IMG/VR virus record: IMGVR_UViG_3300025162_000016
Location: 1 to 64,000 of that record
Length of the DNA stretch: 64,000 bases
Reading direction: 5' to 3' (one strand)
Shown here: one piece after another, positions 9,859-52,525 of the stretch
How the letters are laid out: every line of letters begins with the position of its first letter
How positions within the stretch are numbered: position 1 is the stretch's first letter
Notes under the pieces: model-generated
What the model was told of the DNA's origin: nothing
What the model saw: only the letters and a program-made list of their open reading frames with translations
The model's database searches: none
Translations under genes and position numbers: made by a program

Positions 9859-10320
9859 ATGCAGATGATTAAACTAAAAAAACTTATCGAGACCCGAGGT
9901 CTGGAAACGCAGAATGATTATTCTCGGCAAGAAAGCATTGAACTCACTGGACCTGAAGAAACCGATATTGATTATTATGACGATTTAAATAGAATGGAAA
10001 AAGAATCTGGAATTAATATTCTCAGTAACAAAGAATTGAATACTTTAGCGGTTCAAGACGAAAAGCTGGTCGGAGCCCTCTATGTTTCGATGCAGAATGA
10101 CGAATTTTCCTTTGATGTTATTGTCGATAAATTAGCTAGAGGACAAGGAATTGGAGCTAAACTTATTGATACCGCCCTTTCGCAATATCGAGAGATGAAA
10201 AATGATATGAGATTAACGTTGAAATTAGATGTGGTCAATCAATGGGTCGAAAAATATCTTCTAAAAAAAGGACTAAAAATTGTGGGAAAATACGGTACTC
10301 ATACAATAATGACAATTTAA
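9859..10320 (+). CDS. GNAT-family acetyltransferase with MIKLKKLIE tag
   Basis: VDKLARGQGIGAKLI acetyl-CoA binding motif; likely start 9865. Confidence 0.75.
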   Translation: MQMIKLKKLIETRGLETQNDYSRQESIELTGPEETDIDYYDDLNRMEKESGINILSNKELNTLAVQDEKLVGALYVSMQNDEFSFDVIVDKLARGQGIGAKLIDTALSQYREMKNDMRLTLKLDVVNQWVEKYLLKKGLKIVGKYGTHTIMTI

Positions 10321-10435
10321 TTTTTCTTGTTATTTGTAGTTGACAGAAACGACAATGTGTGTTATCAATAAAAAAAGTTTAATTGTTCCTCGTGGAACAT
10401 CTCCACGAGGAATCATATGATATATATTATAACAT

Positions 10436-10981
10436 ATGATTAGATTAAAAAATATAGTAAATGGAATATTAGCCGAGGAGGAAAAAAGTTCGGAGGATAC
10501 GGTTGCGAATAATAAAGGATATAATATAAAAAATATTTATCATGGTACAACCGAGAAATTTAATGTATTCAAGTTTGATACATTAAAAAATGTAAAAGCA
10601 TCCGATACAGATAAGGTTATATATGCTACAGATTCCGAGGAAGAAGCTAAAATCGCCGGTAGTCCTGATAGCAGTCGATCTAAGGTGATGAAATTATATG
10701 GGAAATTAAAAAATCCTATGGTGGTTGATGCTAAAGGTACAGAAAAAAATAAAAGTTTTGGAACAATTGGTTATAAAAAATTAATACAAATGGCTAAAAG
10801 TAGGAATCATGACGGTGCCATTATAAAAAATGTTATCGATTTTGGTAATACTCCACAGACGACATACATATTTTTTGATACAAAGGCAGTTAAACTCGCC
10901 GGAGAAACTAAAGATAATAGCGGCAATTTAATTCCTTTATCACAGCGATTTAATTCAACCGTAGATGATTTGCGGTTTTGA
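10436..10981 (+). CDS. ADP-ribosyltransferase-like protein (ART of polyvalent-protein type)
   Basis: IYHGT..FNVF, Y.T, LKNP and HDGAII motifs; paralogue of 30841..31380. Confidence 0.55.
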   Translation: MIRLKNIVNGILAEEEKSSEDTVANNKGYNIKNIYHGTTEKFNVFKFDTLKNVKASDTDKVIYATDSEEEAKIAGSPDSSRSKVMKLYGKLKNPMVVDAKGTEKNKSFGTIGYKKLIQMAKSRNHDGAIIKNVIDFGNTPQTTYIFFDTKAVKLAGETKDNSGNLIPLSQRFNSTVDDLRF

Positions 10982-11649: not shown

Positions 11650-12890
11650 TTAGGAGTTCCAAACATTCTACAAAATTTACAAATCTTCGGAAAATGAAGA
11701 CATTGGCGTTGTTTATCTCGGAATATAGAAAAATAGGACAAGAAATTGTTGACATAATATGGAATAATGGATATGAAGAATTTAATATTCAGGAGGATAA
11801 ACTAAATTGTCCGAAATATCTCGATTATAAAAAATTCAACATAAATACATCCTTATCGGCTCGGGCATTAAGTTCTTTGGTTACACAGATATGTTTTAGT
11901 TTATCATCGGCAACAAAAAAACGAAAACAAATATTATATGCAAAGAATAAATTAATATCTGAAGGAAAGCCGCTTGGTAGAATTGATAAGATTCTCGATA
12001 AATATAAATTAATTAAACCAAATTTTTCAAACATCAATCCAGAATTGAGTTCAAAATGTTGCGATATTAAGGATGGAAATTCTTTTAATTATTTTTTAAG
12101 AATAAAATCAATAGGAAAAATATACGGATGTATTAAAATACCTATAAAAAATACAAAAGTATCATTAAAATGGTTAAAAAATGGAAAATTATTAAATTCA
12201 TTTTCTATTGGTCAGCAATATATTTCCCTACGATTTAATATTACAAATAAAAATGTAAATGTTGGAACTAAAATAATTGGAATTGATCAAGGACTGAAAG
12301 ATGTCGCAACATTATCAGACCATCAAATAACACCAAAATATGATATTCACGGGCATTCACTTGAATCAATTATAAATACGATATCAAAGAAGAAACGAGG
12401 TTCAGATGCATTTATTAAATCGCAGGAACATAGAAAAAATTTTATTAATTGGGCAATTAACCAATTAAATTTTAATGACGCCAAAGAAATTCGATTGGAA
12501 AAAATATGGAATATAGGATATAAACGGCGTACATCAAGAAGACTTTCACACTGGACGAATACGTTGATACGAGATAAGATTAAACGGAAATGCGAAGAGC
12601 TGGAGGTTCCAGTTATCGAGCAAGATTCCTCTTATCGCTCTCAACGATGTTCTTGTTGCGGATTAGTACGAAAGGCCAATAGAAATGGTAAAATATATAA
12701 ATGTAAAACTTGTAAATTTGAATCAGATGCTGATTATAATGCAAGTTTAAATCATATTGTAGATTTACCCGAAATCAGTTGGCAGTTTCGCAATCAACGA
12801 AATAATCTAAAATGTGGTTTTTACTGGAAGCCAAGTGGATTATTTAGTATTGATGGAGTGGAGCTTAGAGTCCCACTTTCTACCGATTAA
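11646..12890 (+). CDS. tnpB: IS607-associated TnpB nuclease, RuvC triad intact
   Basis: IGIDQG, IRLEKI, DADYNAS; CSCC/CKTC zinc finger. Confidence 0.88.
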   Translation: MIRSSKHSTKFTNLRKMKTLALFISEYRKIGQEIVDIIWNNGYEEFNIQEDKLNCPKYLDYKKFNINTSLSARALSSLVTQICFSLSSATKKRKQILYAKNKLISEGKPLGRIDKILDKYKLIKPNFSNINPELSSKCCDIKDGNSFNYFLRIKSIGKIYGCIKIPIKNTKVSLKWLKNGKLLNSFSIGQQYISLRFNITNKNVNVGTKIIGIDQGLKDVATLSDHQITPKYDIHGHSLESIINTISKKKRGSDAFIKSQEHRKNFINWAINQLNFNDAKEIRLEKIWNIGYKRRTSRRLSHWTNTLIRDKIKRKCEELEVPVIEQDSSYRSQRCSCCGLVRKANRNGKIYKCKTCKFESDADYNASLNHIVDLPEISWQFRNQRNNLKCGFYWKPSGLFSIDGVELRVPLSTD

Positions 12891-12986
12891 GATAATTTTC
12901 TATATTTTATCTAACTCTATTAAACAATGAATAAACTAACAGAAAAATCATGATATTAACAATAGTTAGACACCAACTATACACAT

Positions 12987-13022
12987 GGTGAAGTGCTGGA
13001 ACAGACCAGTCACTATATCACC
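12987..13022 (+). CRISPR. Solitary CRISPR repeat, inverted relative to the array
   Basis: GGTGAAGTGCTGGAACAGACCAGTCACTATATCACC; 35/36 identical to the array repeat. Confidence 0.95.
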
Positions 13023-13092
13023 AACGCATCCAGATTGTAAAAAAATGAGAGAATCGTTAGTAAACAAATAAACAAATAAAAAAATATAAATT

Positions 13093-13251
13093 ATGGGAAA
13101 TTCAAGAACAATAAAAAGAAGTATCGCCCGAAACCCAGAACGAGTATGGGTGGCTAAACAAACAGCAGCTAAACAAGAAGAAGATCGTCTTAATTCATTG
13201 AAGTCGAAGAATAACGTGGAATCTAAAGAAATATCCAAAGATTCTCTTTGA
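13093..13251 (+). CDS. Small basic hypothetical protein (52 aa)
   Basis: Open frame MGNSRTIKR..KDSL with AT-rich upstream region. Confidence 0.45.
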   Translation: MGNSRTIKRSIARNPERVWVAKQTAAKQEEDRLNSLKSKNNVESKEISKDSL

Positions 13252-13291
13252 TTTTTCAGAAAAATCAATATAGTTATACATGGTTAAAAGT

Positions 13292-13370
13292 GCGAACGTG
13301 GTACAGTGGCCGACTACGCCTTCTCTACACGGAGGAATCATCGCAGGTTCGAATCCTGCCGTTCGCACCA
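13292..13370 (+). tRNA. tRNA-Val(UAC) with atypical C33 and 7-nt variable region
   Basis: Acceptor GCGAACG/CGTTCGC-A-CCA; anticodon stem CCTTC/GGAGG, loop TCTACAC; T arm GCAGG-TTCGAAT-CCTGC. Confidence 0.8.
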
Positions 13371-13380
13371 GCTTAGTTGT

Positions 13381-13454
13381 CGGTTATAGGTGTTGCGGAA
13401 GCATACAAGTTTTGGGAACTTGTGGGGAGCGTTCAACTCGCTCATAGCCGACCA
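13381..13454 (+). tRNA. tRNA-Pro(UGG)
   Basis: CGGTTAT/ATAGCCG-A-CCA; CAAGT-TTTGGGA-ACTTG; GAGCG-TTCAACT-CGCTC. Confidence 0.9.
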
Positions 13455-13464
13455 AATTTTTGAT

Positions 13465-13535
13465 ATAGTTATCTTATAACGGTAATACGCTAGTTTTGCA
13501 GACTAGAAATCGGGGTTCGGCTCCACGGAATTTAA
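13465..13535 (+). pseudogene. Degenerate tRNA (anticodon TGC, Ala-like)
   Basis: Intact anticodon arm CTAGT-TTTGCAG-ACTAG and GGTTCG T loop, but no acceptor stem or CCA. Confidence 0.5.
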
Positions 13536-13537
13536 AT

Positions 13538-13609
13538 TGCAGTAAGGTGTAAGAGTGCATGTGACTCTCATAAGGTCACGGGCCGGTGCGAATCCGGAAT
13601 CTGCATCCA
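13538..13609 (+). tRNA. tRNA with CAU anticodon (Met or Ile2), partly mismatched stems
   Basis: TGACT-CTCATAA-GGTCA arm; TGCAG/CTGCA acceptor with 2 inner mismatches; T loop TGCGAAT; CCA end. Confidence 0.6.
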
Positions 13610-13655
13610 ATTTTGCTAAACAGCAAATATAAATAAAAAAATAGAAGTTAAAAAT

Positions 13656-14198
13656 ATGAAAAAAATGTTAAATTTGGTAGCGGTTATTGGACTTATTACA
13701 ATGTTGGGCACGGGTTGTTCTACTATTAAAACGTTGACACCGGCACAAGTGTCAATTGGAATTCAACAGACGGCTCAAATTGGTGCAACATATGCTATTC
13801 GACAAAATACCAACAATGTTAAATATTTTGTTTTAGCAGACGCAGCATTGAGTACATTTGTTTTAGGAACGGATCTGTCTCCCGCCTCATTTCAATCGGC
13901 ATTGGCAAATGTCGGATTACAGGATCAGTGGGCACAACTTGCGGTTAGTGCAGTCATTATTGCATATACCGCAACTTATAATCAATATGTCATAAATCAG
14001 GTCAATTCTAATGCGATGGCTAAAGAGTTTTTATTGGCGGTTGATAATGGATTTAAAGTAGCATTGGGAAAACCAGTTGTTCCGATGGTTCCCATTGCGC
14101 TAAAAGGCGAAAGAACGGGAGCAGTTCCTTACTTCCTTAAAGATGGGAAGATAGATAAGAATGCGATTTACACAAAAGTTTTAGTTACTAAAAGATAA
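13656..14198 (+). CDS. Lipoprotein of unknown function
   Basis: Lipobox LGTGC. Confidence 0.7.
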   Translation: MKKMLNLVAVIGLITMLGTGCSTIKTLTPAQVSIGIQQTAQIGATYAIRQNTNNVKYFVLADAALSTFVLGTDLSPASFQSALANVGLQDQWAQLAVSAVIIAYTATYNQYVINQVNSNAMAKEFLLAVDNGFKVALGKPVVPMVPIALKGERTGAVPYFLKDGKIDKNAIYTKVLVTKR

Positions 14199-14215
14199 TC
14201 TTTTCTTAATCTCAG

Positions 14216-14250
14216 ACCCCCGATCCGTCAAAAAGATCGGGGAGTTTTCA
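14216..14250 (+). terminator. Terminator-like hairpin
   Basis: CCCCGATC/GATCGGGG stem followed by T-rich sequence; boundaries approximate. Confidence 0.55.
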
Positions 14251-14292
14251 CTTCTTCGTTCTATTTATAAAGGAATACGGCGGTTTCATTTT

Positions 14293-14430
14293 ATGAAAAA
14301 ATTATTGAATATATTCTTTTTATTTCTATTTATAATTTTATTTGTTGGGTGTTTATCGGCGGGAAAAGGATTATCAAACACGGAGGTTGAATTGATGCGA
14401 GTCAATCCACATATACCAATCAATAATTAA
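14293..14430 (+). CDS. Small lipoprotein (45 aa)
   Basis: MKKLLNIFFLFLFIILFVGC lipobox. Confidence 0.5.
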   Translation: MKKLLNIFFLFLFIILFVGCLSAGKGLSNTEVELMRVNPHIPINN

Positions 14431-14443
14431 AATATAATATCAT

Positions 14444-14731
14444 ATGAACGCCGATTCCGTAATTGTTTATGCGAAATTATTTTGTATATTTGGTGGTACA
14501 AGTTTGTTATGTCTTCAAACTGGGCTTTCGCAATGGTCAAACGAGGCGGCAACGCCGTCTAAGGTTCAGTGGATAATGATTTTAGGAGGAAGTTTAGGAG
14601 CTGGATTAATGGCAACTGGCGGATTTTTATCTAATGATTATGGGAACTATAGAAAATCGCAGAATGACATTAATAGCAATAGAAGAATGTCTTTAGTTAT
14701 TCGGAAAAAAAGAGATATGGAAAAATCATAA
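14444..14731 (+). CDS. Small membrane protein (holin-like, two hydrophobic segments)
   Basis: Two hydrophobic stretches and a basic C-terminus; the holin role is inference. Confidence 0.45.
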   Translation: MNADSVIVYAKLFCIFGGTSLLCLQTGLSQWSNEAATPSKVQWIMILGGSLGAGLMATGGFLSNDYGNYRKSQNDINSNRRMSLVIRKKRDMEKS

Positions 14732-14772
14732 TAAGTTCATTGACTTTTCATTGGACATATGATATATATGTT

Positions 14773-14932
14773 AGAGTTAAGTGCGGACAGGTGATCCCCG
14801 CAATGATACGGGGCAGTCATAGATAATAATGTAAGTTGTTAAGTTCAACCGAAGACTATGATAGGAGTCGTCACCGTAATAATAATGGCGGCTTTGATGA
14901 TGAGACAAGATTTTCATCTTACACTTAACTTT
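14773..14932 (+). ncRNA. Unclassified structured RNA of about 160 nt
   Basis: Closing stem AGTTAAGTG(14775)/CACTTAACT(14922); internal CCCCG/CGGGG, GTCATAG/CTATGAT, GTTG/CAAC and GATGA/TCATC stems; TTGACT promoter at 14740. Confidence 0.55.
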
Positions 14933-40368: not shown

Positions 40369-41508
40369 ATGATATTCAACACTTTTCAAGATACGGATAT
40401 TGTCACCGGACGAACAACTCGGGTAGCCAGCGGATTTTGGCCAGGCGGCGTGACTAATTGGAGCCAAAGTTTATTTGTGGACGATTTATGGGACTTAACC
40501 GGATCAATTGCTACACCCTCGCCTGCGTACGGGACGTCTCTTTATGATGTTCGGCGAACCATGTATTATGTGAATGTGTTTCCAAATGCGACATATCATG
40601 AACAACACGATCCTTATTTTTCTGCTACATATGGACATATTGCTGGGAGCGGTTCATTTAATATTGAAACTTCGAGTATTTTAGTAAATCCGACTAAAGC
40701 AATTTATACACAATATAAAAATCTGCTTTTGGGAACCGGAGACGTAGATGGAAAATTTAGTTTTAAAATCGGAAGTGCGGGAGGAACTACTAATGCAAAT
40801 GATATATTTGTTTTAACTTTTTCAACCTATAAAATGAAAGATCGGTTAGACGAAGGGATTTTTCAAATTTCATTTTCCGGCTCATATGGATGTAAAACTT
40901 ATATAGATGATTCTATAACTGACACTCAAGTAAAAACGGTATATAATTTAATCTCAGGATCATTAGAATCAGGTGTTGCTCCAAATGCAACATATGATGG
41001 AGTTGGATTATTTTATCCGAATAATGGTATGTTAGTTATTAATGCTCAAAAGTTAGATGATATAATTGGAATGCAGGCGTCAACTACTGTAAATTATAAT
41101 TCCGATGGTGGTGGAAAATATTATTATTCCAGTGCGTCTTTTTCAACCGATTATAGTCAAAATTCTAAAGTTATCGTGGAGGCGATTAAAGCGGCAGGAT
41201 CGAATACCTCGATTCAAATGAAAATACGAAAATCCGAATATGTTCCGGCAAGACATTATTTTATTCGCATTAAAAATAGAGACTTTAATTATAGCAACAA
41301 TCCGACATATGTTTACGATGGGACCGATGGAAACCATGCCAATGGAACTATTCGTAATAGCGATTTTGTAGACAATCCAAGAACTTATCTGACGACAATC
41401 GGATTATATAATAGTGATAATGAATTAGTAGCTGTTGCAAAATTAAGTCGCCCCGCCGTAAAAACTTTCGATAATGAAATCTTGTGCAAAGTTCGAATTG
41501 ATACGTGA
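40369..41508 (+). CDS. Virion structural protein (paralogue family with 41593 and 47854)
   Basis: GLFYPNNG, FNYSNNPT, TTIGLYN..ELVAVAKLSRP. Confidence 0.6.
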   Translation: MIFNTFQDTDIVTGRTTRVASGFWPGGVTNWSQSLFVDDLWDLTGSIATPSPAYGTSLYDVRRTMYYVNVFPNATYHEQHDPYFSATYGHIAGSGSFNIETSSILVNPTKAIYTQYKNLLLGTGDVDGKFSFKIGSAGGTTNANDIFVLTFSTYKMKDRLDEGIFQISFSGSYGCKTYIDDSITDTQVKTVYNLISGSLESGVAPNATYDGVGLFYPNNGMLVINAQKLDDIIGMQASTTVNYNSDGGGKYYYSSASFSTDYSQNSKVIVEAIKAAGSNTSIQMKIRKSEYVPARHYFIRIKNRDFNYSNNPTYVYDGTDGNHANGTIRNSDFVDNPRTYLTTIGLYNSDNELVAVAKLSRPAVKTFDNEILCKVRIDT

Positions 41509-41592: not shown

Positions 41593-42912
41593 ATGTTAAA
41601 GCAAATTCAACGCAATAATTTTCTTACGGTGCCATTTGTTGCTTCTAAAAAATGGAATTTACGTAATATTGATAATGAGGCTTTAGCTGTTATTGATGAT
41701 GAATACATTGCATTAGAATATGTAGATTATTATGGCAATCCTCTTCTTAATCGTGATTGTAACATAACGCTTGAACAGCAACGTAATAATAATGTTATTT
41801 TTGAAATAGGTAGAAAATCTACCGGAATTTTTTATCCAGATCAGGAAGAAAAAAATGATACTGGAACTTATATTCGACTGGTATATGATCAGACAAAATT
41901 AGCTTTTTATAATGAATATAAGAATCCTTTGAAAATTTTTGGGGTGGAGAATATTGATTTTGGTAATAGTAGAATGTTTCGATATATTGCAGATGAGTTT
42001 CGAATGTTTACTCTTCCAAAAGCATTTTTTGGAGATTCTATTAAAAAGAAAAGCGTATCCTTTATGGATAATGCATTGGATGATTATGTTCAAATAAATG
42101 ATGATGGATATGGAAATTTGATAGCTACAAAAAATCTTTTTTCTAAAATTCAAGAGGTTAGAAAGTTTTCAAATGCTTATAAAGAAGGAGATGCCGCAAA
42201 TGAATGTCCCCCAGTTGTGATTCCTACAACCACTACGACTACATCTACCACGTCTACTACATCTACGACTACTGCACCGACAACAACTACTACGACTACT
42301 ACAACTACTGAAGCTCCTCCACCAACAACTACTACAACAACCAGCACAACTAGCACTACCAGTACTACAAGCACAACATCAACAACCAGTACAACTACTG
42401 AAGCTCCTCCTCCACCAACAACAACAACTACTACGACTACTACAACTACTGAAGCTCCTCCTCCTCCAACAACAACAACTACTACGACTACTACAACTAC
42501 TGAAGCTCCTCCACCAACAACTACTACTACGACTACTACAACTACCGAAGCTCCTCCACCAACAACTACCACTACCACTACGACAACTAGTACCACATCA
42601 ACGACAACAGCGCCTCCTACATGTCCTGAATGTTCCACTTACTCCGCTACAACAGTATATTGTCCGAATACTGTTTTGTTATTCTCAACACAGGCTCAGT
42701 TCTGTCAAGATTTAAAAGATGCTTGGGGATTCGGAAGCGGTCATTCTGTTTTTATTTGGAAACCAATATATGATGGTATTAATGGAGCAACGGTTATTTC
42801 TAATCTTGCTACATTATGTGGAATGACGTTTACCCAAACATCCACTACATTGGGGAATACAACTTGTGAAATAACTCCTCCCGAAACAGAGTTTCGGTTT
42901 ACTGTGCCGTAA
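41593..42912 (+). CDS. Structural protein N-half fused to a mucin-like Thr/Pro repeat
   Basis: FGDSIKK..DDGYGNL then T-rich repeats and a Cys-containing tail. Confidence 0.65.
   Translation: MLKQIQRNNFLTVPFVASKKWNLRNIDNEALAVIDDEYIALEYVDYYGNPLLNRDCNITLEQQRNNNVIFEIGRKSTGIFYPDQEEKNDTGTYIRLVYDQTKLAFYNEYKNPLKIFGVENIDFGNSRMFRYIADEFRMFTLPKAFFGDSIKKKSVSFMDNALDDYVQINDDGYGNLIATKNLFSKIQEVRKFSNAYKEGDAANECPPVVIPTTTTTTSTTSTTSTTTAPTTTTTTTTTTEAPPPTTTTTTSTTSTTSTTSTTSTTSTTTEAPPPPTTTTTTTTTTTEAPPPPTTTTTTTTTTTEAPPPTTTTTTTTTTEAPPPTTTTTTTTTSTTSTTTAPPTCPECSTYSATTVYCPNTVLLFSTQAQFCQDLKDAWGFGSGHSVFIWKPIYDGINGATVISNLATLCGMTFTQTSTTLGNTTCEITPPETEFRFTVP
42226..42621 (+). repeat. Coding tandem repeat, (T)n-EAPPP x5 plus STT runs
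   Basis: ACN codon runs with five GAAGCTCCTCC units. Confidence 0.95.
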
Positions 42913-42921
42913 TAAAATAAT

Positions 42922-45165
42922 ATGTTATCTGTTATAATTCCCTGTTGGAGAGATAATTCCAATTTAATTAATACTTTACAATCGATGTATTCAACTTCCA
43001 CATCGGAATTTGAATGTATTATTGTGGACGATGCCTCTCCTATTCCTGTCATTATTCCAAATGAGTATAAAAATAAATTACGACTGATAAGAAATAATAA
43101 ACAACTTGGTTGTGGTAGATCCAGAACATTAGCCGCTAAATTAGCTACTCAGAAATATTTATTTACCATTGACAGTCATACAGACTTCGAACAGGGGTGG
43201 GATGATGTTATAAAAAAGAACTTAAAATTTGTAGATAATAATACTATTATTTATTTTCCTCTTAAAATTAGTAATACTTGGGATCGTAATTTATACGATT
43301 TTTGCGATATACGTTATGGAAGTTTAGCTTATCTATATAATCCCCGAAATAAAAACTTTTTAGGCGTAGAACAAATAGTCAATACAAAAATTGAACCTAA
43401 TTGTTTACATGCATCATATGTTATTAAACGAGATTATTTTTTATATTTAAAGGGTTTACTTGATGTAAAATATTGGGGTTCCGATGAATTAATATTAACT
43501 ATTAAAATATTAATGACAGGAGGAAACATAAAACTAATTCAAGATGTTATATTAACACACGTTGATTTACGGAGTGGAATGCACATTAGAAACTTGTATT
43601 ATATCTATTATAATATTCTACGAATTGCAAAAACACTAATGAGCGTAGAAGAGTATAATGAGTTTTTGAGTTTCATAGATAAAACTCAAATACCCGTTCA
43701 ATCATTTAAATTCTTAGATGATGATGTAGAAGAAATAGAAGAATTTAAAAAGTATTATAAAGAGATTTTTATTCACGATTTTTCTTGGTTAAAAGAAAAA
43801 TTAAATTTTGATTTATCCGACAAAAATAATCCTTTACATTACAATGCATTATTAAATCGAGATACTATAAATAAACGATTAGAAAATCAAAAATTAATAC
43901 ACAAAGAATGGCCTGTAGTCAAAAATACATGGGAAAAGGCAGACGCATTTATAAACTCGGTAGCAAGCCGAGGAATTTTATCGACAACGATGAATTTAAT
44001 TGGGATAGATAATAATTCCGGAGAAAAAGTATCGGAAGAAATTTATACTATAAGGCATAATTCTTGTTTTGGAATAACCGGTTCTAACCAATGTTCTCAA
44101 CTTAAATATGCGGAGAACTTTGGTCATTATTGCGGAGCGTGTGGATGTGGGCAAACAAAATTAGCTAAATTGGATGGAGATGGATATAGATATACAAAAC
44201 TTCATTATCCGTATCTTGAATGTCCATTAAAAAAACATGGATTTTCTAATTATATTGAAAAAAAATCAATTCTTTCAATTATTATAACTTGTTGTAATGA
44301 AAAAAAAGAGTATCTTAATAGAACAATTGATTCTATAAGAAAAACCGCTGGGAATGAACCAGAAATAATTATCATTGACGATGCTTCTATTATTCCTATT
44401 GAAAGCAATGAAAGAGTAATACGAAACGATGTTAGAATTGGGGTAGGAAGATCGAGACATAAAGGGGCTATAGCGGCTTCCAATCAATATTTACTCATTA
44501 CAGATGGTCATATGATTTTCGATAATGGGTGGTATGAAAATTTCATTGAACGGGCAAAGACAGCCAAACTAAATGACATGTTCTGTGGAACCTGTTTGGG
44601 ATTAGACGAAAAAGACAAAGATTTATCCGCCCATAAAGGAGCATACCACGGAGCAAGAATAGAGCTTTACAACGAAAAAGAAAATCAAATATTAGAAGGA
44701 AAATGGATACCCGAAAAAAGTGAAATGGAATATGAAATATCTTGCTTAATGGGAGCGTTATATTTTGTCAGGAAAGACTGGTTTTTAAAGATTCGTGGAT
44801 TATCCGATATTAAAATGTGGGGATCGGATGAGCCGTTTCTAAGTCTGAAAACACTATTATGCGGCGGACATATTTTTTTGCTAAAAAATGTGAGAGCGGG
44901 ACATGTTTTTAGAGATAGTGCGCCATACACTACAGGAGTAGAATATTTGGTCTATAATAAAATTAGAATGGCAAAAACATTATTACCGGATGAATTGGCT
45001 AATAAACTTATAGATAAATTACCGAAGGATGGTAATTTTAATGCAGCAATGAAAATGTGCGAATTGGAGAAAACTGAAATTGAAGAATATAAAACATATT
45101 ATAAATCTATTTTTATAAAAGATTTTTATGAATTTTGTAAAGAATACGATATAAAATTATTATGA
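42922..45165 (+). CDS. Tandem GT2 glycosyltransferase (two domains) with central Cys-rich module
   Basis: Two S.II...IIVDDAS..G.GRSR..D.H..F..WGSDE units; CGACGC..CP linker. Confidence 0.85.
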   Translation: MLSVIIPCWRDNSNLINTLQSMYSTSTSEFECIIVDDASPIPVIIPNEYKNKLRLIRNNKQLGCGRSRTLAAKLATQKYLFTIDSHTDFEQGWDDVIKKNLKFVDNNTIIYFPLKISNTWDRNLYDFCDIRYGSLAYLYNPRNKNFLGVEQIVNTKIEPNCLHASYVIKRDYFLYLKGLLDVKYWGSDELILTIKILMTGGNIKLIQDVILTHVDLRSGMHIRNLYYIYYNILRIAKTLMSVEEYNEFLSFIDKTQIPVQSFKFLDDDVEEIEEFKKYYKEIFIHDFSWLKEKLNFDLSDKNNPLHYNALLNRDTINKRLENQKLIHKEWPVVKNTWEKADAFINSVASRGILSTTMNLIGIDNNSGEKVSEEIYTIRHNSCFGITGSNQCSQLKYAENFGHYCGACGCGQTKLAKLDGDGYRYTKLHYPYLECPLKKHGFSNYIEKKSILSIIITCCNEKKEYLNRTIDSIRKTAGNEPEIIIIDDASIIPIESNERVIRNDVRIGVGRSRHKGAIAASNQYLLITDGHMIFDNGWYENFIERAKTAKLNDMFCGTCLGLDEKDKDLSAHKGAYHGARIELYNEKENQILEGKWIPEKSEMEYEISCLMGALYFVRKDWFLKIRGLSDIKMWGSDEPFLSLKTLLCGGHIFLLKNVRAGHVFRDSAPYTTGVEYLVYNKIRMAKTLLPDELANKLIDKLPKDGNFNAAMKMCELEKTEIEEYKTYYKSIFIKDFYEFCKEYDIKLL

Positions 45166-45752
45166 ATGATATAGTAGAAAATATAATTAAAGAAAAACCA
45201 GAATCAATTCACAAATTAATACCATCTGAATTTTTTACGAAGTATGATTCGTATGACTATGTGTGGAGTGGAAATTGTTTTGAATGGTATTATGCCATTA
45301 GCAAAGTGATACAACCAAAAACATTTATGGAAATCGGGGTCAGATTCGCATTTAGTTTTTTACCATCTATGATTGGCGGAGATAAACTTGAATATGCTCT
45401 TGGTTGGGATTTAGAAACGTATGGAAACAATACAATAGCAATTGACAATCTTACAAAATATTATCACGGATCATCTAAATGGGAAATATTACATGTAGAT
45501 TCACAACTACAATCGGAACTTCCTCAATTTTTTGATTTAGTAAGTATTGATGGTTGTCATGAATATGATGGAAAAATTCACGATTTAAAAATGGCAATGA
45601 ATAATTCTAGATATGTTATATTAGATGATTATGATTATCATTCCGATGTTCGTAGAGCAACAGACTTCTTCTTAAAAGAATATAGAGATAGAATTGAATG
45701 GAATGAATATATAAAAACATTTAGAGGAAGTCAACTTATAAAATTTAAATGA
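45162..45752 (+). CDS. Class I SAM-dependent methyltransferase (Methyltransf_24-like)
   Basis: FMEIGV, IDGCHEY, ILDDY. Confidence 0.75.
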   Translation: MNDIVENIIKEKPESIHKLIPSEFFTKYDSYDYVWSGNCFEWYYAISKVIQPKTFMEIGVRFAFSFLPSMIGGDKLEYALGWDLETYGNNTIAIDNLTKYYHGSSKWEILHVDSQLQSELPQFFDLVSIDGCHEYDGKIHDLKMAMNNSRYVILDDYDYHSDVRRATDFFLKEYRDRIEWNEYIKTFRGSQLIKFK

Positions 45753-46417
45753 AATATTTAGACTTTTTTGAAGATGTATATTATATCAATTTAGATTATA
45801 GAATTGATAGGAAAATACTATTTGAAAAAAGAGCATCTGATGTAGGAATTATTCCTAATAGATTTTCAGCAATACAACCAACTGAAATAGAATGTCAATC
45901 GATTACTCCTTTTAAAGAAATAAGAAGATTTAAAGTTGGATGTACAATGTCTCATCAGGCAGTAGTTAAAATAGCTAAAGAAAAAAATTTTTCAAATGTT
46001 TTAATATTTGAAGATGATTGTCTATTTTTGGAAGGATTTCAATCAAAAGCTCAATTATGTGTTAATGAATTAAAAAATTTACATTGGGATATTATATATT
46101 TTGGTGGAGAACCTAATAATCAATGTGTAGATATATCAGATAATTTGGTAAAAATAGAAAATGGCGGAGTTTATTGTTGTCATGCTTATGCTGTTAATAA
46201 TACATTTTATGATAAAATACTAAATGTAAATCCTCATCAGATAGATGTTATAGATATATTTATTTTAAACTATGAATGTTCACGAAGAATATATCTTTTA
46301 AGTAGAGATTTACTAGCTGTTCAAGATGGAATTTTTTCAGATTTAAAACAAGGATTAAATGAAGCTGCAGCTTCTTATATGAAAAAAGGGTGGGATAAAT
46401 ACGTTAATAAAAAATAA
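45749..46417 (+). CDS. Glycosyltransferase family 25
   Basis: YYINLDYRIDRK, GCTMSH, LIFEDD, CHAY. Confidence 0.85.
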   Translation: MKYLDFFEDVYYINLDYRIDRKILFEKRASDVGIIPNRFSAIQPTEIECQSITPFKEIRRFKVGCTMSHQAVVKIAKEKNFSNVLIFEDDCLFLEGFQSKAQLCVNELKNLHWDIIYFGGEPNNQCVDISDNLVKIENGGVYCCHAYAVNNTFYDKILNVNPHQIDVIDIFILNYECSRRIYLLSRDLLAVQDGIFSDLKQGLNEAAASYMKKGWDKYVNKK

Positions 46418-47070
46418 TGGAAAAAATTATACATCAAATTTGGGTTGGTAAATATAAAATGCCAAAAAGAGAAAAATCATTTGTTGAATTAATGAAACAA
46501 AAAAATTCCACATGGGAACATATGTTGTGGACAGATTTAGAAGTATTACAATTAAATATGCCCCCAAATATAAAAAATGCTTATAATTATTTCTTAAAAG
46601 ACGATGATTATGTTGCTCAAGCAGATATTTTAAGATTATTTTTAGTTTATGAATTTGGAGGTATATATCTAGATGTAGATTTTGAAACCAGAAAGGGATT
46701 TGATGAATTAAATCTTTTATCATATGATGGATTCATATGTTATCATGATACAGATATTAGAGTTGATACCATTCCTAATGGTATATTTGGTAGTAAAAAA
46801 GGTAATAAATTATTTGAATTTTTAAATAAAAATATATCATCTAATTATCATACTCCTTATGTTGTAGGAAAATTTATTAAACAATATTACAATTTAAATC
46901 TAGAAAAAACAGAACATCTTGGTGAAAATGGATTGTTAAATTATTTTAAAAGAGATAATATATTTTATATGCCATTTAATGACTTTCATAACAATTATTA
47001 TTTTCATCATGCGTTATATTCTCATTCACCAGAAATGAAACGAAAATTTAAAGAAGGAAAAATAGAATGA
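46417..47070 (+). CDS. Glycosyltransferase family 32 (DXD sugar-binding)
   Basis: KIIHQIWVG, ADILRL, GGIYLDVD. Confidence 0.85.
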   Translation: MEKIIHQIWVGKYKMPKREKSFVELMKQKNSTWEHMLWTDLEVLQLNMPPNIKNAYNYFLKDDDYVAQADILRLFLVYEFGGIYLDVDFETRKGFDELNLLSYDGFICYHDTDIRVDTIPNGIFGSKKGNKLFEFLNKNISSNYHTPYVVGKFIKQYYNLNLEKTEHLGENGLLNYFKRDNIFYMPFNDFHNNYYFHHALYSHSPEMKRKFKEGKIE

Positions 47071-47798
47071 CAAATCCAAAAATTACATGCCTCACGTCTA
47101 CTTATGGTAGATTATCAAAATTAAATGAAGCAGTTTCCTGCTTTTTAGATCAAGATTATGAAAATAAAAAATTAATAATTCTCAACAATCATCCAACACC
47201 TTTAATTTGTGATTTACCACAAATTATTGTATATAATGAACCAATATATCCTACTCTAGGAGATTGTAGAAATAGATTAATAGAATTAGCAGACGGTGAT
47301 TTTATCAGGACGTGGGATGACGATGATCTTTATATGCCTTGGACACTTTCTCAAGGAATAAAATATATAAAAGATAGTCCTGCATGGAAACCAAAAAAAT
47401 CTTGGTTTTGGTTAAAAGAAAAAAATCCTGAATTGGCTGAAAACGTATTTGAAGCTGCAATATTAATTAGAATTGACATTGCTAAAAAATATGGATATTT
47501 AAAATCTTCTGGAGGAAATGAACATGAAACTTTATGTAAAGGCATAGAAAAGGAGGGCGGTTGTAGTAACGACGACCTTGGTGATTTAGCATCTTATGTA
47601 TATCGGTGGGGATGGGGAAGTTGGCATATTTCAGGAAGTTTAGGTAGCAATACCATTGAAAATAGAACAAAAACGTGGTGTGAACATAATAATGATGTAC
47701 AAAACGGAATTATAAGAAAAGTAGATTTATCCGAATATTGGAGTCATTTCCCAACGTGGAATCCAAATTTACGAGCTTTCAACAAACAACTAGTTTAA
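47067..47798 (+). CDS. Glycosyltransferase family 2
   Basis: ITCLTSTYGR, FLDQDYEN, RTWDDDD. Confidence 0.8.
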   Translation: MTNPKITCLTSTYGRLSKLNEAVSCFLDQDYENKKLIILNNHPTPLICDLPQIIVYNEPIYPTLGDCRNRLIELADGDFIRTWDDDDLYMPWTLSQGIKYIKDSPAWKPKKSWFWLKEKNPELAENVFEAAILIRIDIAKKYGYLKSSGGNEHETLCKGIEKEGGCSNDDLGDLASYVYRWGWGSWHISGSLGSNTIENRTKTWCEHNNDVQNGIIRKVDLSEYWSHFPTWNPNLRAFNKQLV

Positions 47799-47853
47799 TT
47801 GGCTCGGTTCTTTTCAAATTAAATAAGCGTCAAGCTGATATGTATTAAGTAGA

Positions 47854-50214
47854 ATGTATATTGAAGTCCACAATGCAAATTACGGATATGCCACTGCCAC
47901 GTATGGGGATTACGTTGCCATCGGTAATCCAGTTTTCCTACGATATACCGGGAGCACTCCTGATGTATACTATACCGGATCGGTAGATGTTTTCCGATAT
48001 AATAAAACAACCGATCAACACGATTTAATTAACACTCTTTTTGTTCACGGGGCGGGATTAGAAACCCTATTAGCCACCGAACTAATTGATCCGTTATTAC
48101 ATACAGAATATGGATCTTACTGGTCGGCAGACTTGGACATCTGGATCGACAGAGAGAAATATTATTCTTCTATAGAAGATGGGACAGGTGTTTCTCTGGA
48201 TATGTATGCCAAAACACTGGTAGCGGGAGTTCCATATTATAGAGTAAGATTTAAGACCGATTATGTTGAATTATTTGCTTCGGGATCCGCCGTCGATATT
48301 TATGATTTCACACGAAAAGAGACAATTCCCGGCACAGACCCTTATGTTGGTTCTTTGATGAATCCACATAGTTATATAACTGAATCATTTGGAATAGGAG
48401 TGGGAATAAATAGCGAATGGATAGCAGTAGGATCTCCACTAGTAAGTTCTTCCTGCGGAATGGTATATGTTTATCAAAATATCTCAACTGGAAGTAATAA
48501 TTTTAGTTGGTCTCTTTTTCAAACAATAACTTCTCCAAATCCCATGCCAGAGCAGCAGTTTGGACGAAGTGTAAAATTAAATAAACAAAGTGGATATTAC
48601 AGTTCTAGTATGGTGGTTGGATGTGGACTATCTTCTTCAAATGAAGCTTATTATTTTGAGTTTATTAGCGGAAGTTGGATTTCCAGTTATACTTTTAAAC
48701 CAACCACCGATATTTACCCTTTAACATTCGGCAATTATCCTCCGTATGCTCCGACGATGAGTCTAAATAGTGGGTTTGGATACGATGTCTCTTTATTTAA
48801 TAATTCGGTTATTATTGGGGCGTATGCAGATAGATTGGTATACGAGTATACCGGCTCCTCTCAATTTCAACAGGGTGCCGTGTATATATTTGAAAAATGT
48901 CATGACGTGCCGTTATCCAAGTTTCGATTGGCGTTAAAAACATATGGAACCCCCCTCACATTAAGAAACAATAGAATGGGATTTTCGGTTGATATGTTTG
49001 ATAAATATGCCGTTGCCGGTATACCCAAAATAGATTCATTAGATATGACGCCTTGTTTCGTTCAAGGTACATTAGGGCAACTTCACTATTGCGATCAAGC
49101 ATTGGAAGACATGTTGCAAGGTCAAGCTATGTTACTTGAAAAGAACACTTCTTCTTTAGATTGGGAAATTATAAATGTTTATCAAAAGAAAAAACGCTTT
49201 TTAAGTCCGCATCGACACTTCGGATGGGATGTTTCCGTTGACGGAAGGTCTATGGTCGTGGGTGCCCCCATGTATTATAGCGGTTCCAGATTTATTAATA
49301 TTGAGACAACTGCCAGCAGTGGAGTTACCATTGATGATATCGCAGGTAAAGCATATATTTATAATTTTCCTAATCTCCGACCCGAATTTCATGTTGGAAA
49401 CGTATTTTACCGAAATGGAAAAATTGTTATAATGACGTCCGGATCGGCATTCAATGGACTGTTTTTAAATCCCGTAAGCAATATAAATTATGAATATGAT
49501 TTAACTTACAACAGTCAAAGAACAATTCATGAACAACAGATTTTATGTAATGTGGAACCGGGAGAATTTAATGTTAGTACAAATCCATCCGCAATAATGT
49601 TACCTTCTTCGACATTAGATCTAAATAAAAATGGGAAATTTGATTTTCAAGATGTAGACGTTCTTTTAAGATATTTACAATATAAACAAGATTCAACCAC
49701 CGACTGGAGTTCTTCTATCTTGTCCGCCGATGATGAAATAAGTTTTTATAACTATAACGCATCACAGTGGAATAACACCGATTCAGTATGGAGTTCGAGT
49801 TTTTATAGATTTGAAAACGTCGATACCACTTTTATAGATTCTTTGGATATCAATTTCGATAATAAAATTAATGGCTCAGATATGATCGTATTGTGGAAAT
49901 ATTTTTCAAATAGATTGGAAGAAAAGAATTACAATACCTGTGTTAATATTAACTGTAAAAGAAAATTGGTAAGTGAAGCGATTAGTTATCTAAATTCAAT
50001 TTCAAAAAGACATTATCTTCCACAAATTTCTCCGGAGTTTTTTAACTATGATACTTTAAGCGCAGGGGATAAAACCGGATCATTTCTTGCACCGATGGTA
50101 TCTACAATTGGGCTATTTGACGGGCTAGATCTAGTTGCAGTGGCCAAATTAGGATCGCCGGTCAAACTCCCTAAAACATTATCAACAAATTTTTGCATCA
50201 AAATGGATTATTGA
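47854..50214 (+). CDS. Structural protein: FG-GAP-like repeats, EF-hand/dockerin-like loops, conserved C-half
   Basis: FGIGV..IAVGSP repeats; DLNKNGKFDFQD; HVGNVFYRNG..EFNVSTNPS..TIGLFD..LVAVAKL. Confidence 0.6.
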   Translation: MYIEVHNANYGYATATYGDYVAIGNPVFLRYTGSTPDVYYTGSVDVFRYNKTTDQHDLINTLFVHGAGLETLLATELIDPLLHTEYGSYWSADLDIWIDREKYYSSIEDGTGVSLDMYAKTLVAGVPYYRVRFKTDYVELFASGSAVDIYDFTRKETIPGTDPYVGSLMNPHSYITESFGIGVGINSEWIAVGSPLVSSSCGMVYVYQNISTGSNNFSWSLFQTITSPNPMPEQQFGRSVKLNKQSGYYSSSMVVGCGLSSSNEAYYFEFISGSWISSYTFKPTTDIYPLTFGNYPPYAPTMSLNSGFGYDVSLFNNSVIIGAYADRLVYEYTGSSQFQQGAVYIFEKCHDVPLSKFRLALKTYGTPLTLRNNRMGFSVDMFDKYAVAGIPKIDSLDMTPCFVQGTLGQLHYCDQALEDMLQGQAMLLEKNTSSLDWEIINVYQKKKRFLSPHRHFGWDVSVDGRSMVVGAPMYYSGSRFINIETTASSGVTIDDIAGKAYIYNFPNLRPEFHVGNVFYRNGKIVIMTSGSAFNGLFLNPVSNINYEYDLTYNSQRTIHEQQILCNVEPGEFNVSTNPSAIMLPSSTLDLNKNGKFDFQDVDVLLRYLQYKQDSTTDWSSSILSADDEISFYNYNASQWNNTDSVWSSSFYRFENVDTTFIDSLDINFDNKINGSDMIVLWKYFSNRLEEKNYNTCVNINCKRKLVSEAISYLNSISKRHYLPQISPEFFNYDTLSAGDKTGSFLAPMVSTIGLFDGLDLVAVAKLGSPVKLPKTLSTNFCIKMDY

Positions 50215-50590: not shown

Positions 50591-51004
50591 ATGTCGGATT
50601 TAGGACATTGGATGCTTCCTGCTGATGCATTACAGGATATTCCTGTAGATTCCATTGGATTTGTTTATTGTATTACTAATAAAACTACTAATAAAAAATA
50701 CATTGGCAAAAAACTATTAGAAAATAAAAAGAAAAGAAAGCCATTGAAAGGTAGGGTTAATTCTAGAAGATATAAAGTAGAATCTAATTGGAAAGAATAT
50801 ACCGGATCATCTCCTATATTAAATGCAGATATAGAAAAATGCGGCAAAGAAAACTTTATATTTGATATTTTATCTTTTCAACCATCTAAACTTCTGTTAG
50901 CATATTGGGAAACTAAAACTATTATAGATCGAAATGCTATTTTTAGTAATGAATACTATAATGAAGTTTGTAACTTACGAATACGCAATAGAAAATCACA
51001 ATGA
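50591..51004 (+). CDS. GIY-YIG nuclease family protein
   Basis: GFVYCITN..KKYIGKK; YTGSS; YYNE. Confidence 0.75.
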   Translation: MSDLGHWMLPADALQDIPVDSIGFVYCITNKTTNKKYIGKKLLENKKKRKPLKGRVNSRRYKVESNWKEYTGSSPILNADIEKCGKENFIFDILSFQPSKLLLAYWETKTIIDRNAIFSNEYYNEVCNLRIRNRKSQ

Positions 51005-51303: not shown

Positions 51304-52525
51304 AAACTCCCCTACCCTAAAGGGATAGGGGCTTCTATGCTGTTCACAGCAAGAGATTGTCTTCCCAATCTCAAAATGTTTCTTGCCGCATTTATGTCTC
51401 TATCCATAGATAGACCACACGAACAATTGAAAACTCGATCTTTCAACTCCATTATCGTTCTCGTTCCACATTGGCTGCAAGTTTGACTAGTATAGGCAGG
51501 GTTGATTTTTATCAATATCTTATCAGCATATGCTGCTTTATAAGATATTATGTTTCCAAACATACTCCACGCTACATCATTTATCTGTTTACTACACCAT
51601 CTTTTCTTTAACAATTTATTTGTTTCAATATCTTCTATAAATATAAAATCATATCTGTTTAATATACCATTTGTTGTTTTGTGAAGAAAATCATTTCTCT
51701 TATTTACAATTCTCTCATGAATTCTTCTAGCAACTTTCCATTTTTTCTGTCTCTGTTTTTTTGCTAATTGCTTTTGCTCTTTCTCAAAAAATCGTGGATT
51801 GTTTATTTTAGTTCCATCATCAAAAGTGGCAAAAGATAGAATCCCAACATCTATTCCAGTTTCTTTACCTGTTCTTCTAAATTGTTTTTTATTATTTGGA
51901 ATATCGCAACAAGATATAGAAACGAACCATTTATTTGTTGGGGTTTTGGCTATGGTTATAGTTTTTGGAGTTCCAAATAATTTTCTATGTAATACAATAT
52001 CAACTTCTCCTACTTTTGATAATAATAATTTATTTTCTTTTATTTCGCACCCATTATTATATTGCGGGTAACAAATAGAAAAATATCTACCTTTTCCACG
52101 AAATCTAGGATATCCCGGAGTATCTCCATTTTTCAATCTTCTAAAAAATCCTTGGTATGCTAAATCAACTCTTATTGCTACATTTTGTAAACATTGAGAA
52201 TATACAGAAGTTAGTTGGGGATATGTTTCTTTTAAAATTGGTATTTGTTTGATTGAATCATAACAAGACACAGACTTCTTTTCTTTTTCCCAACTATTCT
52301 TTCTAATTTCAAGTAAATGATTATAGAGAAACCTACAAGTTTCCAACTGGTTATTCAGGATTGTCTCCTGTTTCTTTGTTGGATATATTCTGTATTTATA
52401 TGTAAGTTTCATTTTCTACATATATGTATATCAAAGAATGTGAAAACGTTGATTTATTTTGAATTATTTTTCTCTTGGTCGAATTCATCCCCAAGGCTAA
52501 AGCCGTTGGGGTTTTCTTCTCCCAA
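51300..52525 (-). mobile_element. IS200/IS605-family tnpB-only element
   Basis: Left-end hairpin 52489-52511 plus ATGAATT; right-end hairpin CCCCTATCCCT/AGGGTAGGGG ending TTCAC at 51300. Confidence 0.8.
51312..52412 (-). CDS. tnpB: RNA-guided endonuclease TnpB, close paralogue of 7596..8672
   Basis: GIDVG, FIEDI, DRDINAA; CSQC/CSC zinc finger. Confidence 0.92.
   Translation of the reverse strand: MKLTYKYRIYPTKKQETILNNQLETCRFLYNHLLEIRKNSWEKEKKSVSCYDSIKQIPILKETYPQLTSVYSQCLQNVAIRVDLAYQGFFRRLKNGDTPGYPRFRGKGRYFSICYPQYNNGCEIKENKLLLSKVGEVDIVLHRKLFGTPKTITIAKTPTNKWFVSISCCDIPNNKKQFRRTGKETGIDVGILSFATFDDGTKINNPRFFEKEQKQLAKKQRQKKWKVARRIHERIVNKRNDFLHKTTNGILNRYDFIFIEDIETNKLLKKRWCSKQINDVAWSMFGNIISYKAAYADKILIKINPAYTSQTCSQCGTRTIMELKDRVFNCSCGLSMDRDINAARNILRLGRQSLAVNSIEAPIPLG

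Follow-up and report, generated by a model that had tools for sequence, protein, structure and literature searches.

Mucin-type O-glycosylation is initiated by the polypeptide GalNAc-transferases (ppGalNAc-Ts) of glycosyltransferase (GT) family 27 (GT27). In Gram-positive bacteria, serine-rich-repeat adhesin loci encode a long Ser/Thr-repeat acceptor together with cytoplasmic GTs, a two-domain enzyme included, which build a short O-glycan on the acceptor before its export or assembly; the initiator is the GT4 enzyme GtfA/B and the loci depend on accessory Sec export. Among giant viruses, PBCV-1 (with Vp54, the multi-domain A064R that includes a methyltransferase, and an atypical N-linkage) and Mimivirus (with fibril glycosylation) glycosylate virion surface proteins with no need for the endoplasmic reticulum or the Golgi, using virus-encoded nucleotide-sugar pathways and sugar methylation, and we know of no GT27-like initiator or poly-Thr stalk described for them. 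Here we examine a locus in a 64,000-nucleotide (nt) stretch of viral DNA (the window), which is the first 64 kb of the 368,758-bp IMG/VR record IMGVR_UViG_3300025162_000016. In this locus, the gene for a predicted acceptor protein with a poly-Thr stalk (41593; genes are named by their first position in the window) is followed by five genes for predicted glycan-modifying enzymes. Documented cases of glycosylated structural proteins are rare in phages, although glycoproteins were detected in the jumbo phage XacN1 (PMC5852040, in which PBCV-1 glycosylation is also mentioned). In the case that has been studied most, the mycobacteriophages Che8, Corndog and Myrna use GTs to modify their own virion proteins (Freeman et al. 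2023, as cited in PMC12619734), and the account given in PMC12619734 places these glycans at the C-terminal ends of the capsid and tail-tube subunits, with virion shielding as the proposed role. Moraphage jumbo phages are reported to carry core GT genes whose role is unassigned (PMC12619734). That phages glycosylate their own virion proteins is thus already known, and what is new here is the combination of a predicted GT27-like initiator with a co-encoded poly-Thr stalk; our literature searches turned up no phage in which a GT27-like enzyme is described, nor one with a poly-Thr virion protein or a stalk of this kind encoded beside such an enzyme.

We interpret the locus, with moderate confidence, as a cytoplasmic, mucin-type protein O-glycosylation cassette located between two conserved baseplate/fibre-module genes of a jumbo phage. 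Like the mycobacteriophage systems, it has phage-encoded GTs that are genetically linked to structural genes, but its candidate acceptor is a dedicated poly-Thr stalk of ~130 amino acids (aa) in a fibre/baseplate-module protein, its lead enzyme is GT27-like, its enzyme genes adjoin the acceptor gene and its host is not an actinobacterium. The presence of a putative acceptor and a set of GTs in one locus, two-domain enzyme included, is also reminiscent of the serine-rich-repeat loci, from which the system differs in its GT27-like predicted initiator, in belonging to a phage and in having no accessory Sec here. As in giant viruses, a nucleotide-sugar pathway island is also present in the genome, whereas PBCV-1 and Mimivirus infect eukaryotes and the acceptor types differ.

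The lead enzyme (747 aa, 42922..45165; all features are on the + strand unless stated otherwise) contains two PF00535 domains, domain 1 (42922-43881) and domain 2 (44263-45165), separated by a Cys-rich domain (43882-44262). When the whole enzyme was compared with PDB using phmmer, 16 of the 17 matches at E <= 0.1 were ppGalNAc-Ts, with best E-values of 2e-14 for domain 2 (residues 451-730) and of 7.5e-10 and 2e-8 for domain 1. The DxH, Gal/GalNAc-T (WGSDE) and GHVFR motifs all fall within the aligned region and pair with those of GalNAc-T2. The metal motif DxH is present as DSH at residue 84 in domain 1 and as DGH at residue 528 in domain 2, WGSDE is found at residues 185 and 633, and the third motif reads THVDLR at residue 212 in domain 1 and GHVFR at residue 660 in domain 2; residues D528, H530, W633, G634, S635, E637, G660, H661, F663 and R664 do not vary among 14 homologues. 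An AlphaFold2 model of domain 2 was obtained with a pLDDT of ~90, and its top 50 Foldseek matches in PDB were all ppGalNAc-Ts (E 4e-19 to 4e-15 over ~300-340 aligned columns) of human, mouse, fly or Toxoplasma origin. The two halves of the enzyme are thus closest to eukaryotic polypeptide GalNAc-transferases, in sequence as well as in fold. The likeness to GT27 enzymes such as human GalNAc-T2, Drosophila PGANT9 and Toxoplasma GalNAc-T3 comprises the GT-A fold, the DxH and Gal/GalNAc-T motifs and the His and Arg of GHVFR. However, identity is only ~22%, no secretory route is present here, and the phage enzyme combines tandem catalytic domains with an uncharacterised Cys-rich domain and is presumably active in the bacterial cytoplasm. 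We predict from these features that the 747-aa enzyme transfers the first sugar to peptide Ser/Thr, i.e., that it is an initiating polypeptide O-glycosyltransferase.

Among the loci examined (related viral loci and proteins are referred to by L and P numbers), the double GT27-like layout was observed only in this phage, the N-terminal domain of its relatives being a different, SpsA-like GT2. The Cys-rich domain (FCGxCGCG...KLHYPYLECP) has no Pfam match; IMG/VR contains at least 399 stretches that encode it, in most cases as a separate open reading frame (ORF) of 150-230 aa. Its Cys pattern suggests a zinc-binding module. It was once found fused to GT9 and Methyltransf_24 (L010). The domain 2 family has 2,464 members. 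Homologues of the lead enzyme are also fused or adjacent to members of eukaryote-typical families, namely GT6 (ABO-type, PF03414), GT29 sialyltransferase-like (PF00777, weak) and GT9 (P0038, P0041, P0039, P0044 and L089:2223-2795). These associations hint at varied glycan structures across the phage group. Searching IMG/VR with the 747-aa enzyme returned a single match, the same phage in another record (100% identical over 22 kb), and there was therefore no repeat-length polymorphism to compare. A third word-based homologue search gave unnamed metagenomic proteins only, and a cluster look-up generic names only.

The predicted acceptor protein encoded immediately upstream (439 aa, 41593..42912, identified as an ORF with its translation) consists of a conserved N-terminal anchor domain of ~205 aa (41593-42216), a poly-Thr/EAPPP stalk (42217-42612) and a C-terminal knob of ~96 aa with six Cys (42625-42912). 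The preliminary description of this DNA had noted about 130 aa of T/EAPPP repeats, and the tract proved to be 132 aa long (residues ~209-340), with 75% Ser/Thr (88 Thr and 11 Ser, in addition to 19 Pro, 7 Ala and 5 Glu). Its units are of the form T(n)EAPPP, and the underlying DNA repeat has a 45-bp period with 7.6 copies and 76% matches (TRF). Such homopolymeric Thr/Ser-Pro tracts resemble mucin tandem repeats. A genome-wide examination of 888 ORFs in the 369-kb genome identified one strong Ser/Thr (S/T) tract, namely this stalk. A 153-aa Val/Gly-rich ORF on the opposite strand (42177-42638, - strand) merely mirrors the ACN-rich Thr repeat and was discarded as an artefact, not a gene. The N-domain of 41593 forms a family of its own, with 29 database matches at 43-63% identity, and the C-terminal extensions of this family vary: none, immunoglobulin (Ig)/I-set, He_PIG, FN3-like, or an S/T stalk with a Cys knob. 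The replacement of the distal part by Ig/FN3 domains in homologues is typical of exposed decorations. Two related loci each encode two 41593-type N-domain paralogues with differing distal parts (L004:10001-11140 and 12462-14867; L007:7415-8614 and 10001-10765), which fits an exchangeable-tip appendage family.

If the enzymes act on the stalk, the two should be found together in related viruses, and co-occurrence in relatives had been proposed in the preliminary description as a way of checking its idea. All 12 loci with a domain 2 homologue of at least 44% identity (L002, L003, L088, L089, L090, L094, L095, L096, L009, L098, L099 and L100) have a Thr-rich ORF immediately upstream where readable, and both the tract and the cassette are missing from four sister loci (L004-L007), in which the 41593-like genes have no S/T tract. 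Ten of the 12 upstream ORFs are clearly poly-Thr, and the remaining two (L089 and L096) show only a short Thr-rich stretch before the contig end. The Thr-rich ORFs ride on at least four different N-terminal scaffolds, one of which is the 41593-type anchor. Window-type loci are L002, L003, L088, L089 (partial), L090 (partial), L095, L096 (partial) and L100. In L094, a short N-terminus lies beside a T4 gp15-like gene; the stalk and knob of L009, which was placed without a check of flanking genes, are similar to those of L094, with homology between its knob and those of the window-type loci; in L098 the scaffold is an unrelated 648-aa protein; and in L099 an FN3 domain is combined with a lectin-like C-domain, and a Cys knob is absent. 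L002 has a second poly-Thr linker in the gene just after the cassette. The pattern search for domain 2 used a 12-sequence alignment, a 33-sequence one being too diverse, while an initial locus search had caught the Cys-rich domain, and its loci serve as a background control: a poly-Thr ORF was detected in one of these 79 viral loci, and that one is L009. Fisher tests of co-occurrence gave values of 1e-7 and 4e-14 for loci that are not independent. In a tree of the FG-GAP protein encoded downstream, the window-type loci with GTs form one clade and those without GTs another, and this phylogenetic clustering weakens the Fisher values; the use of four or more scaffolds is the stronger argument. 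A GT-bearing locus without the repeat, which had been named as one finding that would speak against the preliminary idea, was not encountered among the close homologues, but was common where the relative of domain 2 is a more distant, single-domain protein (26-39% identity): only 3 of 27 such loci have an S/T-rich ORF within 6 kb.

The same data bear on whether the lead enzyme has some other acceptor. It is conceivable that the GT27-like enzyme acts on another phage or host protein (the capsid, the FG-GAP protein or a receptor of the host, for example), with the poly-Thr tract linked to it for some other purpose, for instance as a decoy or recruiting scaffold, since the Cys-rich domain could be a protein-docking module and the prediction of a complex between enzyme and stalk was uninformative. 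We think this rather improbable, because a dense S/T tract is found in no other ORF of the genome and the adjacency to poly-Thr holds in loci that have no FG-GAP neighbour (L094, L098 and L099).

Downstream of the lead enzyme, the reading frames encode four smaller proteins. The first (196 aa, 45162..45752) is a probable class I S-adenosylmethionine (SAM) methyltransferase of a divergent, Methyltransf_24-like type. In ESM Atlas it reaches a feature score of 0.99 to viral Methyltransf_24 clusters, its ten best family-bearing matches belonging to one family/clan, and it matches the bona fide Methyltransf_24 that occupies the same slot in L088 at a BLASTP E-value of 8e-6, over 51 aa only, including a DG(C/A)HEY motif; no PDB match was found. 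The Methyltransf_24 proteins in the same slot of L002 and L088 pass PF13578 at 82-84 bits. The methyltransferase assignment of 45162 thus draws only on language-model similarity and gene position. The other three proteins pass the Pfam gathering thresholds of their families: a GT25 enzyme, the predicted glycan extender (222 aa, 45749..46417; PF01755, 48 bits versus a 24-bit cut-off), a GT32-type DXD enzyme (217 aa, 46417..47070; PF04488, 43.5 bits versus a 23-bit cut-off) and a GT2 enzyme (243 aa, 47067..47798; PF00535, 33.6 bits versus a 23.3-bit cut-off). The GT25 protein has weak PDB matches to procollagen galactosyltransferase 1 and mimivirus R655, and its orthologues in L002 and L003 share 44-45% identity with it. 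The GT2 is the most conserved accessory enzyme (68% identity to L002 and L003), with a PglI-type beta-1,3-glucosyltransferase as its best PDB match (E 1e-4). Of the cassettes examined, that of this phage alone contains the GT32-type gene, for which tblastn gave no match in the cassettes of relatives; the similarity of its product to SetA-/TcdA-type catalytic domains is weak and reflects only the generic GT-A/DXD fold they share, and the protein is a transferase, small and intact, rather than a toxin. The preliminary enzyme calls accordingly hold for the GT2-type tandem, GT25, GT32-type and GT2 by Pfam, whereas the methyltransferase falls below the Pfam cut-off, and the "methyl-capped" glycan proposed at that time would depend on this sub-threshold match.

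The ORFs delimited in the preliminary description were all found in place. The enzyme genes begin 9 nt after 41593 and end 55 nt before 47854, and all four of their internal junctions overlap, as ATGA or TAATG, in agreement with the translational coupling described earlier. The block had also been described as AT-richer than its surroundings, and the GC content of 42922-47798 is 28.5% versus 35.8% for the genome, with none of 3,639 same-size genome windows being lower. None of the six proteins (41593 and the five enzymes) has a transmembrane segment, and a promoter/terminator scan gave nothing above shuffled expectation. The cassette is flanked by two structural-module genes on the same strand, in a position that is equal in seven related loci.

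These features, together with the enzyme families, have to be weighed against the main alternative, in which the enzymes are auxiliary genes that remodel glycans of the host envelope (lipopolysaccharide (LPS)/lipooligosaccharide (LOS), capsule or a host glycoprotein), for instance for superinfection block or progeny release, and the poly-Thr tract is an unglycosylated flexible linker. GT25, GT2 and GT32-type enzymes are typical LOS/LPS and capsule families, relatives carry the PHROG label 'moron/auxiliary metabolic gene', the low GC content suggests foreign origin, distant relatives of domain 2 usually have no S/T-rich neighbour, and a second large glycan island in the genome is unlinked to any S/T-rich protein. 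On the other hand, the lead enzyme resembles peptide-modifying GT27 and not the solved GT2 enzymes that act on lipids or polysaccharides, none of the enzymes has a membrane segment, the cassette lies within a structural block and not among early/host-takeover genes, and host-directed enzymes would not be expected to lie strictly beside poly-Thr ORFs on several scaffolds, as the close homologues do. Remodelling of host glycans consequently appears unlikely to us, although less so than the other rivals considered here.

The second, larger glycan island is located on the minus strand at ~192,500-211,600 of the genome (G000:C1; loci L091 and L092). It encodes sugar-synthesis enzymes (RmlC-like epimerase, NAD epimerase/dehydratase, cytidylyltransferase, GHMP kinase, DegT aminotransferase and UDP-Glc/GDP-Man dehydrogenase), transferases (GT2, GT10-like, a GT2-GT11 fusion, a GT25-DUF268 fusion and another GT2), and a methyltransferase along with a Methyltransf_24. 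Also present are a B12-radical-SAM enzyme interrupted by an HNH-containing intein, a split pair of transketolase genes and an intein/LAGLIDADG-bearing protein, and an IS605 OrfB/TnpB-like gene (G000:C1 ~190,441-191,751, - strand; PF01385 and PF07282) edges the island. Judging from its gene content, the island could provide donor sugars, possibly unusual ones, for the cassette.

Glycosylation of phage DNA carrying hypermodified bases, as a protection against restriction, is a further use that the enzymes might have. This is a common function of phage GTs (PMC12619734, PMC5852040), and multi-GT arrays are described as building DNA-linked glycans (Pyle et al. 2024, as cited in PMC12619734). The known routes, however, need ThyA/hydroxymethylase, and no homologue of a thymidylate-synthase-family (ThyA) hydroxymethylase was found in the complete genome, for which reason we rejected DNA glycosylation. 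The location of the cassette in the structural module also argues against it and, to our knowledge, GT27-like, GT25 and GT32 are not among the families known for DNA glycosylation. We thus regard it as highly improbable.

The preliminary description viewed the enzymes and the stalk as an island inserted into a split structural gene: a 40369-like gene would have been interrupted by the cassette, with 41593 and 47854 as its halves. Gene 40369 (379 aa, 40369..41508), the intact paralogue of the preliminary description, encodes a module-family protein with a C-terminal TIGL..AVAKL motif. Its homologues in the Microcystis phage Mel-JY01 occur on their own or at the C-terminal end of longer proteins, and others are found in Flavobacterium phages and in Rhodothermus phage RM378. 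Gene 47854 (786 aa, 47854..50214) encodes an intact structural-module protein with an FG-GAP beta-propeller region (PF14312) and a dockerin-like segment (PF00404). Motifs 2-4 of the proposed four (GNVFY, EFNVSTNPS and TIGL..LVAVAKL) are indeed located in order at the C-terminus of 47854, in a ~70-aa module that is common to the 40369 family (BLASTP E 0.012 to 40369, and 1e-4 and 3.5e-6 to Mel-JY01 paralogues; hhalign probability 71%), and this part of the idea stands. The sharing of motif 1 by 41593 and 40369 (DDGYGNL versus IDDS) was, in contrast, at noise level (BLASTP E = 1.0): a collinear profile match between residues 73-174 of 41593 and 90-184 of 40369 reached an hhalign E-value of 0.0025 with a probability of 12%, which is not significant. 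This weak match (41593-42120 versus 40369-40920 of the window) includes GSGxF and DD motifs. It may reflect remote homology, in which case 41593 and 47854 could carry complementary halves of an old module.

Synteny rules out the split-gene explanation, to which we assign next to no likelihood. The sister loci L004-L007, which have no cassette and in which an unsplit gene would be sought, keep 41593-like (254-379 aa) and FG-GAP (~800-1165 aa) genes as two separate genes, directly adjacent and 6-22 nt apart in L005 and L006. Orthologues of 47854 (~800 aa) match it end to end at 48-70% identity over residues 1-786 and occur at full length in L002, L004, L005, L007, L088, L090 and L100; none of the 29 members of the N-domain family has a 40369-type C-terminus; and in L002, three further genes separate the cassette from the FG-GAP gene. 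In Mel-JY01, the ~350-aa 40369 module stands alone or routinely caps larger proteins with other N-termini, and the last gene of the block keeps only the final ~100 aa of the module, as 47854 does. The C-terminus shared by 47854 and 40369 is therefore real, but reflects an old domain arrangement. The cassette site is intergenic and the flanking genes are intact. What survives of the earlier proposal is the pairing of an acceptor with glycan-assembly enzymes, to which the GT27-like lead enzyme and the co-occurrence lend support, and not its framing as an island inside a split gene. In L002 (15476-17161) and L003 (6974-7624), the first 34 residues encoded by the gene after the cassette are 76% identical to residues 1-34 of 47854, and this shared start is followed by a poly-Thr linker and unrelated domains. 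Such a pattern suggests an N-terminal docking peptide combined with domain shuffling.

The record that holds the window is a complete virus genome with direct terminal repeats and 35.8% GC, and belongs to a jumbo phage. Large structural genes, all on one strand, make up the block that contains the region, with a gp6-like baseplate wedge gene upstream at 28865. Mel-JY01 is the closest isolate that shares this gene order, and RM378 and the Flavobacterium phages are more weakly linked; these relatives point to aquatic phages and to a host that is not an actinobacterium. On the 3' side of the block, two small ORFs at 50591 and 51001 (GIY-YIG-type) and an adjoining IS605 OrfB/TnpB-like ORF (51312-52412, - strand) were assigned by first-pass reading only, without a domain check, and a primase-like gene and an SbcC/Rad50-like gene are also found after the block.

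Several observations weigh against our interpretation of the locus. Unlike canonical GT27 enzymes, which are type II membrane proteins, the 747-aa protein lacks a ricin-type (CBM13) lectin domain (no PF00652 match), ending ~15 aa past the catalytic domain, and also lacks a membrane anchor (KD19 peaks at 1.20, and no segment is hydrophobic). The complex predicted for the Cys-rich domain and domain 2 with the stalk-knob tail had a score of 0.00, which is evidence neither way. The AlphaFold2 model of the 41593 N-domain, built from a 26-sequence alignment, reached a pLDDT of only 46.7, which made a fold search impossible; 41593 would be placed in the virion from gene order and the Ig/FN3 extensions of homologues only, and the earlier statement that it sits on the tail likewise draws on gene order. 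For 45162, PF13578 scores 16.8 bits versus the 26.3-bit cut-off and the glycine-rich SAM loop looks degenerate. The wider domain 2 family need not act on poly-Thr, given that 24 of the 27 distant loci have no S/T-rich ORF nearby, and the separation of GT-bearing and GT-free loci into two clades of the FG-GAP tree is a further point of this kind. Nevertheless, a cassette that unites a putative Thr-rich acceptor with enzymes predicted to glycosylate that acceptor, which is the core of our proposal, fits the data and is supported by them, and its product would probably be a sugar-coated virion appendage.

From these sequences we infer a mechanism in which the stalk is the acceptor, and in which the sugars, the enzyme order, the virion location and the biological role would be as follows. 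In a myovirus-like jumbo phage, 41593 would be a modular virion appendage whose conserved N-terminal domain docks to the particle and whose distal part is the ~130-residue poly-Thr stalk tipped by the small Cys-containing knob. The soluble, two-headed 747-aa enzyme would add the first sugar (N-acetylhexosamine or hexose) to Thr/Ser of the stalk in the cytoplasm. The co-translated GT25, GT32-type (only here) and GT2 enzymes would then lengthen the glycan, the Methyltransf_24-like protein may O-methylate it, and the second island at ~192-211 kb could feed donor sugars. A dense coat of O-glycans would make the stalk stiffer and lengthen it to about 30 nm, guard it from proteases and render its surface sticky or shielding, and the appendage could accordingly serve as a stiff spacer, a protease shield or an adhesin.

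A broader proposal, which we put forward tentatively and would rate at somewhat less than an even chance, is that phages carry true relatives of the eukaryotic mucin-initiating GT27 enzymes in a self-contained module of a poly-Thr stalk, mostly with a Cys knob, and a GT27-like transferase, which has moved from one kind of virion protein to another and makes, in the bacterial cytoplasm, mucin-like bottle-brush appendages for phage particles. If true, this would represent a prokaryotic-virus form of mucin-type O-glycosylation, with possible implications for where GT27 came from, for the ways in which aquatic jumbo phages adhere to polysaccharide gels and host capsules or pass through them, and for the evasion of proteases or defences. 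For annotation, the present analysis corrects the flanking genes to intact ones. In these uncultured jumbo phages, the dedicated mucin-like stalk and its ppGalNAc-T-like enzyme are encoded together as one compact and transferable unit. Confirmation of the glycan would bring viruses of bacteria into the range of mucin-type O-glycosylation, would make a soluble, two-headed peptide O-glycosyltransferase available for glyco-engineering along with its co-encoded natural substrate, and would allow one to ask what a glycan coat does on a phage appendage, be it adhesion, stiffness, or protection from proteases and defences.

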